A DNA stretch of 64,000 nucleotides, taken from sequence record MW057919.1; one strand, given 5' to 3'. Shown here one piece after another: positions 25,413 to 52,092 of this stretch (position 1 is the first letter of the stretch; each line of letters begins with the position of its first letter). Made by a program: the position numbers and the translations under genes. The notes under the pieces are model-generated. The model was not told where the DNA came from. It was given only the letters and a program-made list of their open reading frames with translations, and ran no database searches.

Positions 25413-26609
25413 ATGAAAATTAATGAACTTACAAATACTGATTTATTATTAGAAAACCACACTATTAATAAAATTGATTGTTTACTAGGATTACTTTATA
25501 AACATAACTTCGATAAAGAATTTACATCTAAAATTAATTTTGGTATTCTAACGCAAATGACATATCAGAAGGATGATGTCAGTTTCGTAGTGAAGCCTAG
25601 CTTTGAACAAGGTTTTATTAATATCACTTTTAGTAATGATACATCATGGAATGTTAATTTTGCACTCATCGATGGTAAACCTAAATACATTGGTTATACT
25701 GATCAAGAAGTGACAATTGAAGAGCCGCATAGCAGGGAATATTACACTCTAACAAGTGAGAGTATTCGGCAATTAACAATTCAAGTATTAATTAATACAT
25801 GGTATCAAGTAAATAATATTCCAAGCGAAGTATACGAGTATCAACATCACTGGAAACTGGATAAAAATATTCTTAACGATGATGATATTATTCGATACTA
25901 TTATCGTTTCATTTTAGCTACCTATTGGGGAATGCCAACACCTGATAGACAAGCTACATTTGAAAAGTGGTTAGAAAATGACATTGCAAATGGGGAAGGT
26001 GATGACACAACTAATAGTCATTTAAAATGGCTATTCAAACAGGATCATTCTAATATTACTGAAACAACTAATGTTAGAGATGAAATTAATGCATGTAGCA
26101 TCCACCACATTTATCCGTCAGGCAATATTACGTGTGTTTTAACTGATAATAAGAAACCCACACGTTGGCGAGAATATGTAATGCATGCCTTCTATAAAAC
26201 CATTGGGTATACTTGGGTTAATCCAATTGAACTATATTGGCATAAAGGTACTTCTGTGGAGTATGTTAGTTTAGAAACGGTTAATGCCAACCTTTTACTA
26301 GCTGCAAATATTTTCACTGTATACAGTAATTGGAATATTACGGAAAATAGCCATACTTCAGATAACTCTGTATCTATCCCAGCTATTAACCTATTTTGCA
26401 TCAATAGTGAAAATAGTCAATATGCAGTATCCTTTAAGAATAAAAATAATAACTCTTATGAATTATTTGATTCATTATCCTTAAGTGGAAATCAAATAAT
26501 TTCATACACTGAAACCGCTATTGAGAAATCTAATTGTTCTGGTCCATTGAAATTTGTAAGTGATCACGTTATCAAGTTTATTTGTAAGGAACTAACAACG
26601 TGTCGATGA
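25413..26609 (+). CDS. AT-rich early hypothetical protein
   Basis: 398-aa ORF, SD GAGG, own early promoter. Confidence 0.85.
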   Translation: MKINELTNTDLLLENHTINKIDCLLGLLYKHNFDKEFTSKINFGILTQMTYQKDDVSFVVKPSFEQGFINITFSNDTSWNVNFALIDGKPKYIGYTDQEVTIEEPHSREYYTLTSESIRQLTIQVLINTWYQVNNIPSEVYEYQHHWKLDKNILNDDDIIRYYYRFILATYWGMPTPDRQATFEKWLENDIANGEGDDTTNSHLKWLFKQDHSNITETTNVRDEINACSIHHIYPSGNITCVLTDNKKPTRWREYVMHAFYKTIGYTWVNPIELYWHKGTSVEYVSLETVNANLLLAANIFTVYSNWNITENSHTSDNSVSIPAINLFCINSENSQYAVSFKNKNNNSYELFDSLSLSGNQIISYTETAIEKSNCSGPLKFVSDHVIKFICKELTTCR

Positions 26610-47412: not shown

Positions 47413-49293
47413 ATGGCTGTTAACGAAAACGAAATCGGCACCGTTCAAACTCAAGCTACCGCTCCGGCTCCGCAACCCACTACACAGCGTCAAGCTCAAC
47501 GTCCTACTGGCGCGCCTGGGTCTACTACTGGCATTAACCATCTAATGCGTCGCTCTGGTCGGCTAGATGGCTCTGATGCTCGTTCAGCAGATGCCCTACA
47601 AGTATTCACTAAAGTAAAAGAAGAAGCAATCCGCCATCAGGACCTACCTGATGACTTCGATATCCATCGTTTCGATCGCGATGCACAACAAGTGGGTATG
47701 GCTGGTCTACTCATTGTTAAACTAGCTAAAGATATCAATGGTTCCATGAAGGCATTCGTTCGTACTCTAGTACTCGATAACCTACCTGGTACTCGCATCC
47801 GTCCCCGTACCCACAAAATCAACAATGGTCTAACTGATGACATCATTGAAGAGAAGGTACTACCGCGTGATGTATTCACTGCTCAATACTGGAGCAAGAT
47901 CGGCGAGTTCCTACGGAACCGTTACAACATCCCTGGTCTAGAAGTACTATCTGCCGGTCCACGTGCAGTGTATGCTGACTTCGACTTCAAAGATGAACTA
48001 GCTGTTAAGAACCTACTAGTTGAATCCGTTAATATCTGTGAAGATGCTATTGCGCGTCGTAACAATGAGACTCCGTTCTCTATTGCGACCCACATCAAAG
48101 CAGAAAACGAACAGCTTACCTGCAATCTAGACTACAATGGTATTCCGGTTAAAGATAGCTGTGGTAATCCGATCCGTTCTGACCTGGTCATCTCCACTAG
48201 CCGTGGTAAGAAAACCAACGTACCTGAGAACGAGTTCTATGATACCGATAGCCAGCTAAACCAAGTTAGTCTATTCGTAGATCTACATTGGACTCCGACC
48301 ACTGGCCAGCAACAAGGCATGTTTGGCGTAACTCTACCTGGTGCAGTTCTACCTCCGCAGTTCACTCCTTACATCGTTATTACTGACGTTCGTAAGGCGT
48401 CCTGGATCCAAGCATGGACTCTAGAAATGTGGCTGTTCGCGCTTGGTAACGCGTATCGTGCAACTGCATCTCAGGCATGGGCTCGTACTCTAATGCCGAA
48501 GATCGCTACTAGTAAGATGCGTGATATTGGTGCACTTGGTTATTACTCAGAGCTAGGTAAAGCGATTGAAACTCGCACCGAAGCATTCATGGCAGACGAC
48601 AGCAACTTCGTAATGCTAATGAACAAGATGGTTAACCAGAACCCTGCATTCCAGATCGATATCGATCCAATGGGCGACAACTCAGCTATTGAGCAAGTCA
48701 TCCTAGATGCAGCTGGTGGCGTAAACCAAGCTCGTGCAGTTAGCCTGATCTTCCAAGCTCTAACTAACCTATATGGCACTGATTTCCGTCAGTTCTATAA
48801 CCTAGCTGAAGCTGGTCCGATTATCTTTGACAACCATCATGAAGTAGACCTCGGTCACTACACTGATGAGCATGGTGAACTAAGCGACCGTCGTGATCTT
48901 GACGTTCTAGGCGCCATGAACATGTCTGAAGGTAATGATCAAGAGTGGAAGACCTGGTATGCTACTCAAGTAGGTAATGACCACATTGTGCGTCGTATGA
49001 ATAACAGTAAAGGCTTCGACAAGATGTACCTAGGTAACGTTACCTATACTGGTCGTGCTCGTCGTCTAACCTTTAACCCGAAATTCATCACCGCAATGGA
49101 TGCCGCAGCAGCAGCAGCTGGTGTAACTGTAACTATGGAAAACCTAATTACCAACTTCGGTCAACAGCGCTTCGCTGGTTACACCGGTATGGGTAACATG
49201 GCTGTTTCTGGTAGTGCACAAGTTGGTATGGCTGGCAGCATGGGTCAAACTTACGGCGCTCCTTCCTATAATGCACCGGGTACCTGGTACTAA
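47413..49293 (+). CDS. chmA: Chimallin, phage nuclear shell protein (gp54)
   Basis: 626 aa; disordered Q/T/P-rich N-terminus and G/M-rich C-terminal tail ending PGTWY; position immediately before the nvRNAP subunit; strongly biased codons. Confidence 0.93.
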
Positions 49294-49618
49294 TAGGAAA
49301 TACCTCGGTAGATAGGGATGTTAAATAAGTAACATCCCGATTCTAATACTGCGACCCTGTTTCACTTCGGTGATAACGGTTAGGAGTAGGTTCCGTGAAG
49401 TAATCGACTAGTGGACTTAGTCTAGGTCGACCTATCACTACACGAGGATGATAGATCACTTAACCGAAAGGAGTTACTCAAAAGGTGACGTGTGATCAAA
49501 ACTACAATGGATGGTAAAAGGTCCTAGTGCCAGAGCGCTACAGAGAAGAGCGGAGGTTAAGCTTTGTAGACGACGCTAGGATCGGGCCAGGCTCCGTTGG
49601 TGGTCCATTGTAAAAACT
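49294..49618 (+). ncRNA. Candidate large structured non-coding RNA or structured chmA 3'UTR
   Basis: No ORF; at least 8 helices, including perfect 8-9 bp stems, UUCG and GAAA tetraloops and long-range TACAATGGA/TCCATTGTA; closed by a terminator. Confidence 0.7.
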
Positions 49619-49661
49619 GATATAGCGGCTCCTTCGGGGGCCGCTTATATCTCCTTTTTTT
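49619..49661 (+). terminator. Rho-independent terminator
   Basis: GATATA-GCGGCTCC-TTCG-GGGGCCGC-T-TATATC then CTCC and T7. Confidence 0.85.
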
Positions 49662-49686
49662 GTTAATCGATAAATAGGAGTTTGGT

Positions 49687-50823
49687 ATGGGTCTTTATGC
49701 CAAAGTTGTTGATCATGATGAAGTACATGATCAATTTACGGGTAAACGTATTTATGCCAATGATTACAATACGAGTAACTCAGATGAGAAAGAAGAATTT
49801 GATAGGCATTTCTATTCTCATTTCCAAGATTCAGAAGCAATTGAAAGTAGCGTAAGTTGTGATTGTCGAGCAATCGAAGACGCACATAAACTCGGAGTAA
49901 TCTGTGATATTTGTAATACTCCAGTTGTCAATACTTCTAGCCGCCCTATCGAACCATCAATGTGGGTTCGTACACCAAAACATGTACGTAGTCTAATTAA
50001 CCCACGTTTAATCATTATGCTAACTGGATATCTAGTAACTAAAGAATTCGATTTCTTAGCATATCTAACCGATACTTCTTATCGATACGACGTAGAATCC
50101 ATTGCCTCTAAAGAAACACGCAGGAAAGTAGATAGGCTACTGCATCGAGGATTTGAAAGAGGATTAAATCACTTCATTGATAACTTCAATGAGATCTTCC
50201 AATTCCTACTAGATGCAAATATTATCTCTAATAATAAATCCGAATTCGCTCAATTCATTGCTCAGAATAAAGATAAGCTATTCCCTAAATATTTACCAGT
50301 TCCTTCTAAACTCTGTTTCGTAGCAGAATCAACTACATCTGGTACTTACTTAGATAAACCAATTGAAGCAGCAATTGACGCTACCTTAACCTTCGCTAGT
50401 ATTGATGCATCGTCTGTACCACTTAGCCCTATTAAAGCTCAGAATAGGACTATGCGAGGACTAAGACTATATGGCCAGTTCTACGAGATCTACGCAAAAT
50501 CACGAATTGCTCAAAAGCCTGGTCTTGCTCGGCGTCACATGTTTGGTGCTCGTCTCAACGCTACGGCACGTGCAGTAATCACTTCTATTAGTGACCCGCA
50601 TGATTATGATGAATTACATATCCCTTGGGGAGTAGGTTGTCAATTATTAAAGTATCATCTAACTAACAAGTTAAAAGCTAAGTTTAACATGACAACTCGT
50701 GAAGCATTCTCATTTGTATATGAGAATGTACTTCAATATAACCAAATCATCGCTGATCTATTTAAAGAGTTAATTGCAGAGGCCGCACCATATAAAGGAA
50801 TGGGTTGCACTTTTCACCGAAAT
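49687..50823 (+). CDS. nvRNAP beta-prime-type subunit (gp55-like), exon 1 (379 aa)
   Basis: Zn ribbon CDC...CDIC, RHMFGARL..TARAVI, ends ...FHRN at the splice site. Confidence 0.9.
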
Positions 50824-51128
50824 TAATTTGTATATTAATACTAAATGGTTTCCTTGTAATAGAAATATTACTCGACAAAACTCCTTTAATTGCTGGGACA
50901 TCTCAATGAGACAATCAGCAGCGAAGCTTTCCAGAAATGGATTGAACGTTCAACGACTATCGAAAGGCACGAAAGTGAACCGAGTAGAGTAGAGTCAAGT
51001 GACTCGAAATGGGGAGCACCTTACTGGGTAATGCCAAAGGTGAAGATATAGTCTGGTCTGCATGGTGACATGCAGCTGTCTATTATTAATAGACGGGATA
51101 AGCTTAACGAACTTATCTGAACACAACG
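50824..51128 (+). mobile_element. Group I intron 1 (305 nt, no ORF)
   Basis: Exon ends in U and intron ends in G. P AATTGCTGGGA 50888, Q AATCAGCAGC 50913, R GTTCAACGACTA 50948, S GAAGATATAGTC 51042; P1 with U-G wobble (IGS GGTTTC). Removal restores RN|PTLQRG in frame. Confidence 0.92.
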
Positions 51129-51236
51129 CCGACCCTTCAACGTGGATCTACTCAACAATTCTTTATTACTAAAGTAAAAGATGACATTAATGATAATTCA
51201 ATCAGCATGTCAGTATTATGCCTTAAAGCGCCTAAT
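51129..51236 (+). CDS. nvRNAP subunit exon 2 (108 nt, 36 aa); not in ORF track
   Basis: PTLQRGSTQQFFITKVKDDINDNSISMSVLCLKAPN, the conserved segment between the NRxPTL-like motif and NADFDGD. Confidence 0.92.
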
Positions 51237-51733
51237 GGACAACTAACTAACTAAATAAGGTAAAAACAATGGAACAAAACGGAGTAGTGTCCGTCTTTGA
51301 TCCGGCTTCATTTAAAATTGAATATGAAGTGCTTGATAAATACCTTATTAAGTTAATCAAGTCTAGTTCCCCCAGTGAGTAATCATTGGGGTGAGTTCTC
51401 TCTAATTGCTGGGATATCCTGTTAAACTAATCTACCACTGCGAGTCGAAAGACAAAGCCAAGGTTTGAAAAAGATTAGGTAGGGCCAATCAGCAGCCAAG
51501 CTCCGTAACATTCCATTTAGGAATAGGAGAAGGTTCAACGACTATTACGGTATCAGGTGCACCGGTCCTAGAAATAGGATGTAGGGTCAAGTGGCTCGAA
51601 ATGGGAGACACCCCACTCCGAAAGGAAGGGTGAAGATATAGTCTGGTCTGCATGGTGACATGCAGCAGGTGGTAATTATCATGTGGTAATTATACTACCG
51701 GGTATGGATTAACGACCCATACTGAACATAACG
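51237..51733 (+). mobile_element. Group I intron 2 (497 nt) inside the catalytic NADFDGD motif
   Basis: P 51404, Q 51487, R 51533, S 51632 elements; ends GAACATAACG. Removal gives N|ADFDGDQLN in frame. Confidence 0.92.
51269..51382 (+). pseudogene. 37-aa mini-ORF in intron 2, possible homing endonuclease remnant
   Basis: SD AAGGT + ATG; MEQNGVVSVFDPASFKIEYEVLDKYLIKLIKSSSPSE*; lies 5' of the catalytic core. Confidence 0.45.
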
Positions 51734-51952
51734 GCGGATTTTGACGGCGATCAATTGAATTTAACGTTAATGCCTGATGTGTATTTAACTAAAGCAACTG
51801 AACGCATTGCTCCACATACATGGGTTCTATCTATTGATGAACCACATGAAATCTCAGGTAACCTTGAATTACAGGGTCCTGTTGTAGAAACGATTATTAA
51901 TTGGGCGCATGAGAAGTATTTACCACCATTAGAAGAGTGGTTGAAGTCGTAA
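51734..51952 (+). CDS. nvRNAP subunit exon 3 (72 aa; gp56.1-like)
   Basis: GCG GAT TTT GAC GGC GAT = ADFDGD, in frame with track ORF 51755-51952; spliced product 487 aa. Confidence 0.92.
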   Translation, partial: ADFDGDQLNLTLMPDVYLTKATERIAPHTWVLSIDEPHEISGNLELQGPVVETIINWAHEKYLPPLEEWLKS

Positions 51953-51960
51953 TAATAAAC

Positions 51961-51994
51961 TTGCCCCTACCACTTATGTAGTAGGGGCTTTATT
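51961..51994 (+). terminator. Rho-independent terminator
   Basis: GCCCCTAC/GTAGGGGC stem followed by TTTATTT. Confidence 0.8.
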
Positions 51995-52092
51995 TCCTGT
52001 TATGGCAGCGCCTAACTATGGATGTAAAGTTCCACTGGATTTAATTTCAGATTTATATCACTAAGATGCAATAGTGATAAGGGGAATACCCA

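Follow-up and report, generated by a model that had tools for sequence, protein, structure and literature searches.

How does a jumbo phage obtain the catalytic subunit of one of its RNA polymerases from a gene that is interrupted twice in the region of the active site, and where did the two interruptions come from? The question is raised by a 64,000-nucleotide stretch (64 kb; here the window) of the genome of Pseudomonas phage vB_PaeM_kmuB (MW057919.1), a Phikzvirus isolated on P. aeruginosa and referred to here as kmuB. Over 49600-52000, the window agrees with that record at 100%, coordinate for coordinate. In this stretch, the homologue of phiKZ gp55, which is the N-terminal beta′-like subunit of the non-virion RNA polymerase (nvRNAP beta′-N), is broken by two group I introns that flank a micro-exon. 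A first-pass annotation made from the letters alone had recognised both introns and suggested that one is a local copy of the other. The recognition stands; as to the origin, the two are very probably independent, related orphan introns of one family, in which modules have been exchanged between paralogues, and their similarity is not that of a local duplication. We refer to the gene as gene 55 and to the two insertion sites as S1 and S2. Positions are those of the window unless a record or locus is named, and ORF stands for open reading frame. The gene is laid out as follows.

49687 to 50823, plus strand: exon 1, codons 1-379, ending in CAC CGA AAT (His-Arg-Asn); the ORF runs from 49687 to 50826
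50824 to 51128, plus strand: intron 1, an ORF-less group I intron of 305 nt with G as its last base, at site S1 after Asn379
51129 to 51236, plus strand: exon 2, a micro-exon of 108 nt, codons 380-415 (PTLQRG...LKAPN)
51237 to 51733, plus strand: intron 2, a group I intron of 497 nt with G as its last base, at site S2 after Asn415
51734 to 51952, plus strand: exon 3, codons 416-487 (ADFDGDQLN...) and the stop codon, with the Mg-binding aspartates

An in-frame TAA, inside intron 1, stands directly 3′ of exon 1. When joined, the three exons encode 487 residues with DFDGD at 417-421, which is where the structure paper on phiKZ nvRNAP also places the catalytic motif (PMC8287921), and the claim that two splicing events are needed to make a 487-aa enzyme is borne out. 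The insertion points had been put after AAT, between RN and PTLQRG and between N and ADFDGD, with CGAAAT joined to CCGACC and CCTAAT joined to GCGGAT. In phiKZ, exons 1 and 2 are contiguous, and in PA7 exon 1, exon 2 and the ADFDGD codons are all contiguous, with the amino acids in both cases as in kmuB. Since these intron-less alleles give exactly the same joins, the junctions in kmuB go beyond prediction. The kmuB exons are 92-95% identical to phiKZ by megablast. The contiguous PA7 homologue aligns end to end with chain A of PDB 7OGP (E 2.5e-290), which is the fusion of PHIKZ055 and PHIKZ056.1 (508 residues in the deposited entry), PHIKZ056.1 being the phiKZ counterpart of exon 3. The spliced 487-aa product of kmuB likewise agrees with this chain. 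The native gp55 of phiKZ from infected cells is of 56 kDa (PMC4666361), and according to the cited papers nvRNAP transcribes the middle and late genes of phiKZ.

The product of exon 2 is part of the catalytic double-psi beta-barrel and adjoins DFDGD. Across 18 phages, the exon has 16 variable nucleotide sites, all of them synonymous, and its 36-residue peptide is invariant; for this reason exon 2 cannot be unexpressed. It is nevertheless absent from the GenBank record MW057919.1, as had been foreseen for standard annotation, where exon 1 (putative RNAP subunit) and exon 3 are given as separate coding sequences (CDSs). The joined CDS of gene 55 is annotated in none of the 18 records inspected, in which the gp55 homologues appear as fragments.

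Both introns are group I introns by family and by fold. The whole window was scanned with Rfam RF00028 (gathering score 50), and only two matches were returned, one for each intron and each covering the full model (1-253 of 253). The match for intron 1 lies at 50826-51075 (88.9 bits, E 2e-21) and that for intron 2 at 51345-51665 (78.2 bits, E 4e-18); all examined allelic variants of the introns are also full-length matches above the gathering score. As the first-pass annotation had it, each intron has the P, Q, R and S core elements, a U before its 5′ splice site and a G at its end. An RNAalifold consensus over 7 intron types comprises P2, P3, P4, P5, P5a, P6, a P7.x hairpin, P8, P9 and a 3′-terminal hairpin, and 39 of its 66 pairs are kept through changes on both sides. 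P7 is invariant and crosses P3, and it lies outside the covariation scoring. The following elements were located in the two introns.

50819 to 50852, plus strand: P1 hairpin of intron 1, from the ViennaRNA fold of 50812-50885
51039 to 51076, plus strand: P7(3′)-P9 block of intron 1, equal to 51629-51666
51269 to 51382, plus strand: HNH gene remnant in intron 2, an ORF of 37 codons from which the HNH domain is gone
51361 to 51391, plus strand: proposed guide and P2 of intron 2, suggested by folding and by the variant 5′ ends in KEN49 and T2P
51629 to 51666, plus strand: P7(3′)-P9 block of intron 2, equal to 51039-51076
51666 to 51693, plus strand: tandem duplication of 14 nt (CAGGTGGTAATTAT / CATGTGGTAATTAT) in the peripheral region after P9 of intron 2, single copy in T2P

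In P1 of intron 1, exon GAAAU and intron UA (50819-50825) pair with UGGUUUC (50846-50852) in a closed hairpin, so that the 5′ splice site falls on the canonical U.G wobble; the P2 hairpin comes next in the fold. The P1 guide GGTTTCC is conserved across all S1 variants, and no ORF of note is present in intron 1 according to the ORF list.

Intron 2, when aligned with the full-length introns of phiKZ, LC and 124.01, is a deletion derivative of the phiKZ gp56 intron (1372 nt), with about 297 codons of the HNH gene lost. The remnant is an in-frame fusion of approximately the first 18 and the last 17-19 codons of a gp56-type HNH gene; gp56 aligned to it by tblastn with residues 1-25 and 318-334 only, it had no PHROG match, and GenBank notes it as a 'truncated HNH homing endonuclease'. 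The start of the intron (51237-51268) has stops in all three frames (CTAACTAACTAAATAA), followed by a Shine-Dalgarno-like AAGG and the ATG of the remnant. From its sequence, such a layout would halt ribosomes arriving from exon 2 and let translation begin anew at the endonuclease ORF. For P1 of intron 2, the proposed guide GUCU-A-GUU (51361-51368) would pair with exon AAU and intron GGAC over 7 bp, including a U.G pair and a bulged A, and a strong P2 (51370-51378 with 51383-51391) lies just downstream. An extra C at the start of the S2 intron in KEN49 and T2P fits this model, the bulge becoming a mismatch. This modelled P1 is the weakest of the structural assignments. The motif ATTAGG (51474-51479) was also considered as the guide, as it complements the end of exon 2, but it was rejected, being within the stem of the P5 extension.

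The endonuclease genes of the family show what the kmuB introns have lost. All intron ORFs encode HNH endonucleases of PHROG 59; NCBIfam gave nothing useful for them beyond a sub-threshold 'group I intron endonuclease' match. Where an endonuclease gene is present in the introns at S1, at S2 or in the nvRNAP gene 71/73, it sits in the P1 loop, between the 5′ splice site and the guide, as does the 277-aa HNH gene in the S1 intron of GUMS and Churi. GUMS and KTN4 have S1 enzymes that share 73% of their residues; identity drops to 35% with gp56 and to 25-29% with the enzymes of S3 (a third site of gene 55, described below) and gp72. Between the GUMS enzyme and I-TwoI of Twort, it is 33% over 62% of the length. 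When the S1 endonuclease was searched by tblastn against all phage records, no homologue of the HNH family was found in the kmuB genome at E<=1e-10, and so both gene 55 introns of kmuB are orphans. The five intron HNH proteins, searched by tblastn against the window, retrieved only the intron 2 remnant and one weak match, that of the KTN4 S1 enzyme to 25806-25937 (E 6e-4, 40% over 52 aa) within an unrelated ORF for a 398-aa hypothetical protein (25413-26609). We examined the latter as a candidate for a trans-acting endonuclease and set it aside as probably a chance match. Thus, the earlier statement that neither intron encodes a full endonuclease holds, intron 1 being ORF-less and intron 2 having only its 37-codon remnant, and the trans-acting enzyme that was to be looked for elsewhere was found neither in the window by tblastn nor in kmuB at E<=1e-10. 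Since the alleles of GUMS, Churi, KTN4 and phiKZ encode an endonuclease and those of kmuB none, the kmuB introns descend from mobile introns and are not autonomous.

Exon boundaries were mapped in 18 Phikzvirus genomes, and the remaining records were covered by megablast or BLAST spans only. Gene 55 has three insertion sites within 126 nt: S1 after Asn379, S2 after Asn415 and S3 after Asp421, that is, directly after ADFDGD. The lengths of the inserted introns are given below, with 0 for an empty site.

phiKZ: S1 0, S2 1372, S3 0 nt
124.01 and 6B: S1 0, S2 1376, S3 0 nt
Wadjak1, T2P and 30-1: S1 0, S2 480-497, S3 0 nt
kmuB and AttikonH10: S1 305, S2 493-497, S3 0 nt
LC: S1 305, S2 1372, S3 0 nt
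GUMS and Churi: S1 1194, S2 about 497, S3 0 nt
KTN4: S1 1244, S2 1372, S3 0 nt
SL2: S1 1244, S2 481, S3 0 nt
PA7 and Brmt: S1 0, S2 0, S3 1524 nt
OMKO1 and fnug: S1 1244-1250, S2 0, S3 1524 nt
KEN49: S1 350, S2 1373, S3 388 nt

By megablast spans, an S1 intron is present in about 17 of about 44 distinct Phikzvirus genomes, 8 of which have the ORF-less form of the kmuB type. The first-pass annotation had taken intron 1 as an extra one. This is right with respect to phiKZ, which has only the second intron, and does not hold for the genus at large. It had also staked its reading on the introns not being already present in reference phages, and here the survey of relatives goes partly against it, KTN4 and fnug both carrying an S1 intron and both being placed by their records in the species of phiKZ.

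Presence and absence at identical sites vary among close relatives, and the flank haplotypes are linked to the intron state in the 18 phages. Phages with an S3 intron have GGAGAT and CAACTT as its flanks, S2-empty alleles have 7 synonymous differences within 30 nt of S2, and alleles with an empty site often read AAC for AAT (T2P at S1, 50821-50823; PA7, OMKO1, fnug and Brmt at S2, 51234-51236). From the sequences, the flank changes at empty sites look like target-site divergence or co-conversion, as expected of homing. Every Phikzvirus genome, whether mapped or covered by BLAST spans, carries an intron at S2 or S3. Beyond the genus, these sites hold no intron, and 310 of 320 jumbo-phage records align uninterrupted through S1 and S2. 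In search of an intron-free Phikzvirus allele, we retrieved 20 IMG/VR contigs with a contiguous APNADFDGDQLN (degenerate pattern); none of them is a Phikzvirus, because their best match to the kmuB exons is of 65-81% at the nucleotide level and six of them have none.

The most densely occupied gene 55 in the list is that of KEN49 (vB_Pae3705-KEN49, PP456877.1; locus L008, 1145-3381), with three Rfam-confirmed group I introns. The exons between them are of 108 and 18 nt. The smaller one codes for the Mg-binding motif ADFDGD and nothing else, and even the 23-nt exon of Twort orf142 is longer. The S2 intron of KEN49 (1373 nt) carries an HNH gene. Apart from KEN49, the phages in which S3 is occupied have an empty S2. 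The S3 intron of PA7 (locus L007, 1471-2994) is a group I intron of 1524 nt whose 345-aa HNH gene lies after P9 and not in the P1 loop. In a few distant jumbo phages (SaP7 and SPLA5c of Salmonella; C-ZP2022 and Yong XC31 of Vibrio), tblastn alignments break off inside NADFDGD, at query residue 152-153 instead of 157; such an early stop might be due to a further intron at the catalytic motif, or simply be where the local alignment ends.

Where, then, does the similarity between introns 1 and 2 come from? The 38-nt identity between 51039-51076 and 51629-51666, reported in the first reading of the sequence, is exact and becomes 40 of 41 nt if extended. However, 34 of the 38 nt are also present in a third intron. 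This is an ORF-less group I intron of 304 nt in the nvRNAP beta-like gene 71/73 of kmuB (record 65558-65861; locus L006, 2559-2862), a little past the end of the window and about 14 kb downstream of intron 1. Segment by segment, intron 1 is a mosaic.

50824 to 50881, P1-P2: closest to the S1 intron of KEN49/KTN4, 52 of 58 nt
50887 to 50961, plus strand, P3-P6 module: 75 nt, exactly identical to the kmuB gene 71/73 intron (record 65635-65709)
50964 to 51038, P7.x-P8: closest to the S1 intron of KEN49/KTN4, 60 of 75 nt
51043 to 51078, P7 3′ strand and P9: 36 nt identical to the 71/73 intron (record 65775-65810)

Over the P3-P6 segment, intron 1 matches the 71/73 intron at 77 of 82 nt and the KEN49 S1 intron at only 48 of 82 nt, whereas in the flanking segments its identity to the 71/73 intron is 41-52%. 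Against intron 2, the segments outside the shared block give 24/58, 45/82, 28/50 and 13/25 (41-56%). That the 75-nt segment is merely the slowest-evolving part of the family does not hold for the S1 intron of KEN49 and KTN4. Two types of P9 circulate, type A (GCATGGTGACATGC) and type B (CTAGYGARAGCTAG), and the S1 and S2 introns of one genome usually share the type: A in kmuB, GUMS and AttikonH10, and B in KTN4, SL2 and KEN49, with LC being mixed. Churi has a loop substitution, GGCGA, in both its S1 and its S2 intron and not in its 71/73 intron, which over 601 nt does not differ from that of kmuB. Judged from these sequences, the P9 and mosaic patterns are such as fit gene conversion between paralogous introns, and not a single duplication followed by divergence. 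Most short S2 alleles have one common deletion junction whatever their P9 type (that of Wadjak1 is slightly different), and therefore allelic recombination contributes too.

About 33 Phikzvirus records have the 71/73 intron and its flanks without a single difference over 601 nt, a far greater uniformity than that of gene 55 in the same genomes (mostly 93-98% to kmuB). The gp72 endonuclease gene is kept only in phiKZ, OMKO1, fMGyn-Pae01 and FBPa36, and KEN49 is without the 71/73 intron.

The following course of events would best account for the locus. Two independent but related phage IA-like introns occupy two of three insertion hot spots where the nvRNAP beta′-N gene encodes its active site, each being the endonuclease-less derivative of a mobile intron that has its HNH gene in the P1 loop in sister phages. 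Once transcribed, each ribozyme would fold, bind guanosine and cut at the U.G pair of its own P1, and the exons would then be joined at the terminal G of each intron. Both removals would be required for the 487-aa subunit and hence for the double-psi beta-barrel. Structural modules (the P4-P6 domain and the P9 hairpin) would have been exchanged between the paralogous introns, with the 71/73 intron as the likeliest donor. We infer splicing from the intact cores, from the viability of at least 8 isolates with this arrangement and from the phiKZ protein data. As AAU closes each of the upstream exons, skipping of exon 2 is conceivable; its product would lack 36 essential residues. Precedents for exon skipping are known from Twort orf142 (23-nt exon) and Coxiella 23S rRNA (34-nt exon) (PMC10136302).

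Several points weigh against this account. The case for splicing in kmuB is built on DNA comparison and on phiKZ protein data. A long-read transcriptome of phiKZ by ONT-cappable-seq reportedly had, under the conditions of that study, no read from which the gp56, gp72 or gp179 intron was spliced out (PMC10914365). P10 is not evident in either intron, and the proposed P1 of intron 2 is short, with 3 exon base pairs and the bulged A. The 71/73 intron is the likely donor of the modules, and the direction of transfer is read only from its invariance. Against this lack of spliced reads stand the fused proteins observed by mass spectrometry and cryo-EM. The lack calls for caution about detection more than it speaks for an unspliced protein, and may reflect low coverage of early transcripts; the protein and structure data require splicing.

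If one follows GenBank, with its separate CDSs, and takes the lack of splicing in the phiKZ long-read data at face value, the gene might be truly split or decayed, with exons 1 and 3 made as separate polypeptides, exon 2 unexpressed and the inserts dead relics. We find this hardly credible, given that exon 2 is under strict purifying selection, is in frame with its neighbours and encodes part of the catalytic barrel beside DFDGD, that both ribozyme cores are intact with compensatory changes, that the isolate is viable and its arrangement recurs in at least 8 independent isolates, and that the phiKZ enzyme contains the fused protein. The origin of intron 1 from intron 2, by local duplication or by reverse splicing 108 nt upstream, was what the first-pass annotation had proposed. 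It draws on the 38-nt identical block and on shorter shared blocks, and on the AAU before both introns, as one AAU-reading guide could in principle recognise both sites. It is highly unlikely, however, as outside the shared block intron 1 is closer to the KEN49 S1 intron or to the 71/73 intron than to intron 2, the shared block has a further copy in the 71/73 intron, intron 1 has in relatives an HNH gene of its own, distinct from that of intron 2, and the P1 and P2 of both introns are unrelated, with a P5 extension that intron 2 has and intron 1 lacks.

More room is left for a benefit to the phage, though we still regard it as unlikely. ORF-less introns could be kept as immunity against the HNH endonucleases of competitors or as a timing gate set by splicing, both of which had been raised in the first reading. 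For a different RNAP gene, interference between phiPA3 and phiKZ through an intron endonuclease is documented (PMC11620839), each mapped Phikzvirus has an S2 or S3 intron where neighbouring genera are intron-free at all three sites, the ORF-less introns persist in at least 8 genomes, and the 7 synonymous changes near empty S2 and the AAC at S1 of T2P would be expected under selection on endonuclease target sites. Yet selfish homing, co-conversion and slow decay after loss of the endonuclease give the same patterns, and precise deletion of an intron from an active-site codon is hard, so that persistence needs no benefit. A bolder form of the same thought, which we also hold to be doubtful, would see the three sites as a battleground, where ectopic conversion repeatedly swaps ribozyme domains (P4-P6, P9) between the introns of a genome and where occupancy of a site, even without an endonuclease, shields the polymerase gene from co-infecting Phikzviruses. 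If this were true, the orphan pair of kmuB would be a passive shield over two of the three sites, and the genus-wide absence of an intron-free allele would reflect selection and not just the difficulty of precise deletion.

Independent orphan introns with exchanged modules, as preferred here, are partly familiar from known systems. Intron 2 is the gp56 intron already known from phiKZ, shortened by a deletion. It is like the gp55/gp56 intron of phiKZ (PHIKZ055-PHIKZ056-PHIKZ056.1) in site, ribozyme core and 5′ leader, and differs from it in length (497 against 1372 nt) and in a P9/P9.1 region that is of the 71/73-intron type. Intron 1 is a member of an S1 lineage that many deposited genomes contain without annotation, and it shares the site, the P1 guide, P2 and the P7.1-P8 region with the S1 intron of KTN4, SL2, OMKO1, fnug, GUMS and Churi. 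It has no endonuclease gene, and its P3-P6 and P9 modules match the 71/73 intron and not the KTN4/KEN49 type. The paper on KTN4 mentions only extra HNH endonucleases (PMC4908380), and no description of the S1 or S3 introns or of the twin arrangement was found in the open-access literature.

That an essential phage gene may contain several group I introns is well established, as in Twort, and in Bastillevirinae the DNA polymerase and terminase genes have as many as three (PMC11878797). The nearest parallel is Twort orf142, in which related ORF-less group I introns of one gene are separated by a very short exon (PMC10136302; PMC3073962). In kmuB, by contrast, the exon is of 108 nt and encodes indispensable residues of the catalytic domain, and the introns are polymorphic, with endonuclease-bearing alleles. 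Nicking HNH enzymes like I-TwoI of Twort have a relative in the S1 enzyme of GUMS and are absent from the kmuB window. The phiPA3 gene gp210 resembles gene 55 in that an RNAP subunit of a jumbo phage is interrupted, next to conserved catalytic residues, by a group I intron with an HNH gene (PMC11620839). The gene and the site are different ones, however, and the gp55 homologue of phiPA3 is intron-free at all three sites. Since the kmuB introns encode no endonuclease, they cannot attack a competitor and could at most protect their own sites. What goes beyond the first-pass annotation is the three-site hot spot, the 18-nt exon of KEN49, the genus-wide lack of an intron-free allele and the mosaicism at the level of domains.

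Just upstream of gene 55, the 626-aa ORF at 47413-49293 is the homologue of PHIKZ054; the phiKZ and AttikonH10 annotations name this product as the nuclear shell protein, while the kmuB record has only 'hypothetical protein'.

For the annotation of these phages, the arrangement means that exon 2 is missed whenever S1 is occupied and that ORFs inside the introns are called as genes; the joined CDS should be used. The exact identities of 75 and 36 nt between introns of different genes are a clean example of module exchange in group I ribozymes. In these phages, which form a nucleus, transcription is strictly uncoupled from translation (PMC12908238), and folding of two or three ribozymes in tandem may therefore have to take place with no ribosome translating the RNA, a point that the present alleles make open to study. 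Taken as a genus, the Phikzviruses offer a natural allele matrix of three sites, 108 and 18 nt apart, each of which can be empty, ORF-less or endonuclease-bearing. As these are laboratory-tractable phages on PAO1, the matrix makes intron-endonuclease competition, co-conversion and immunity testable in the very system where interference competition was first shown.

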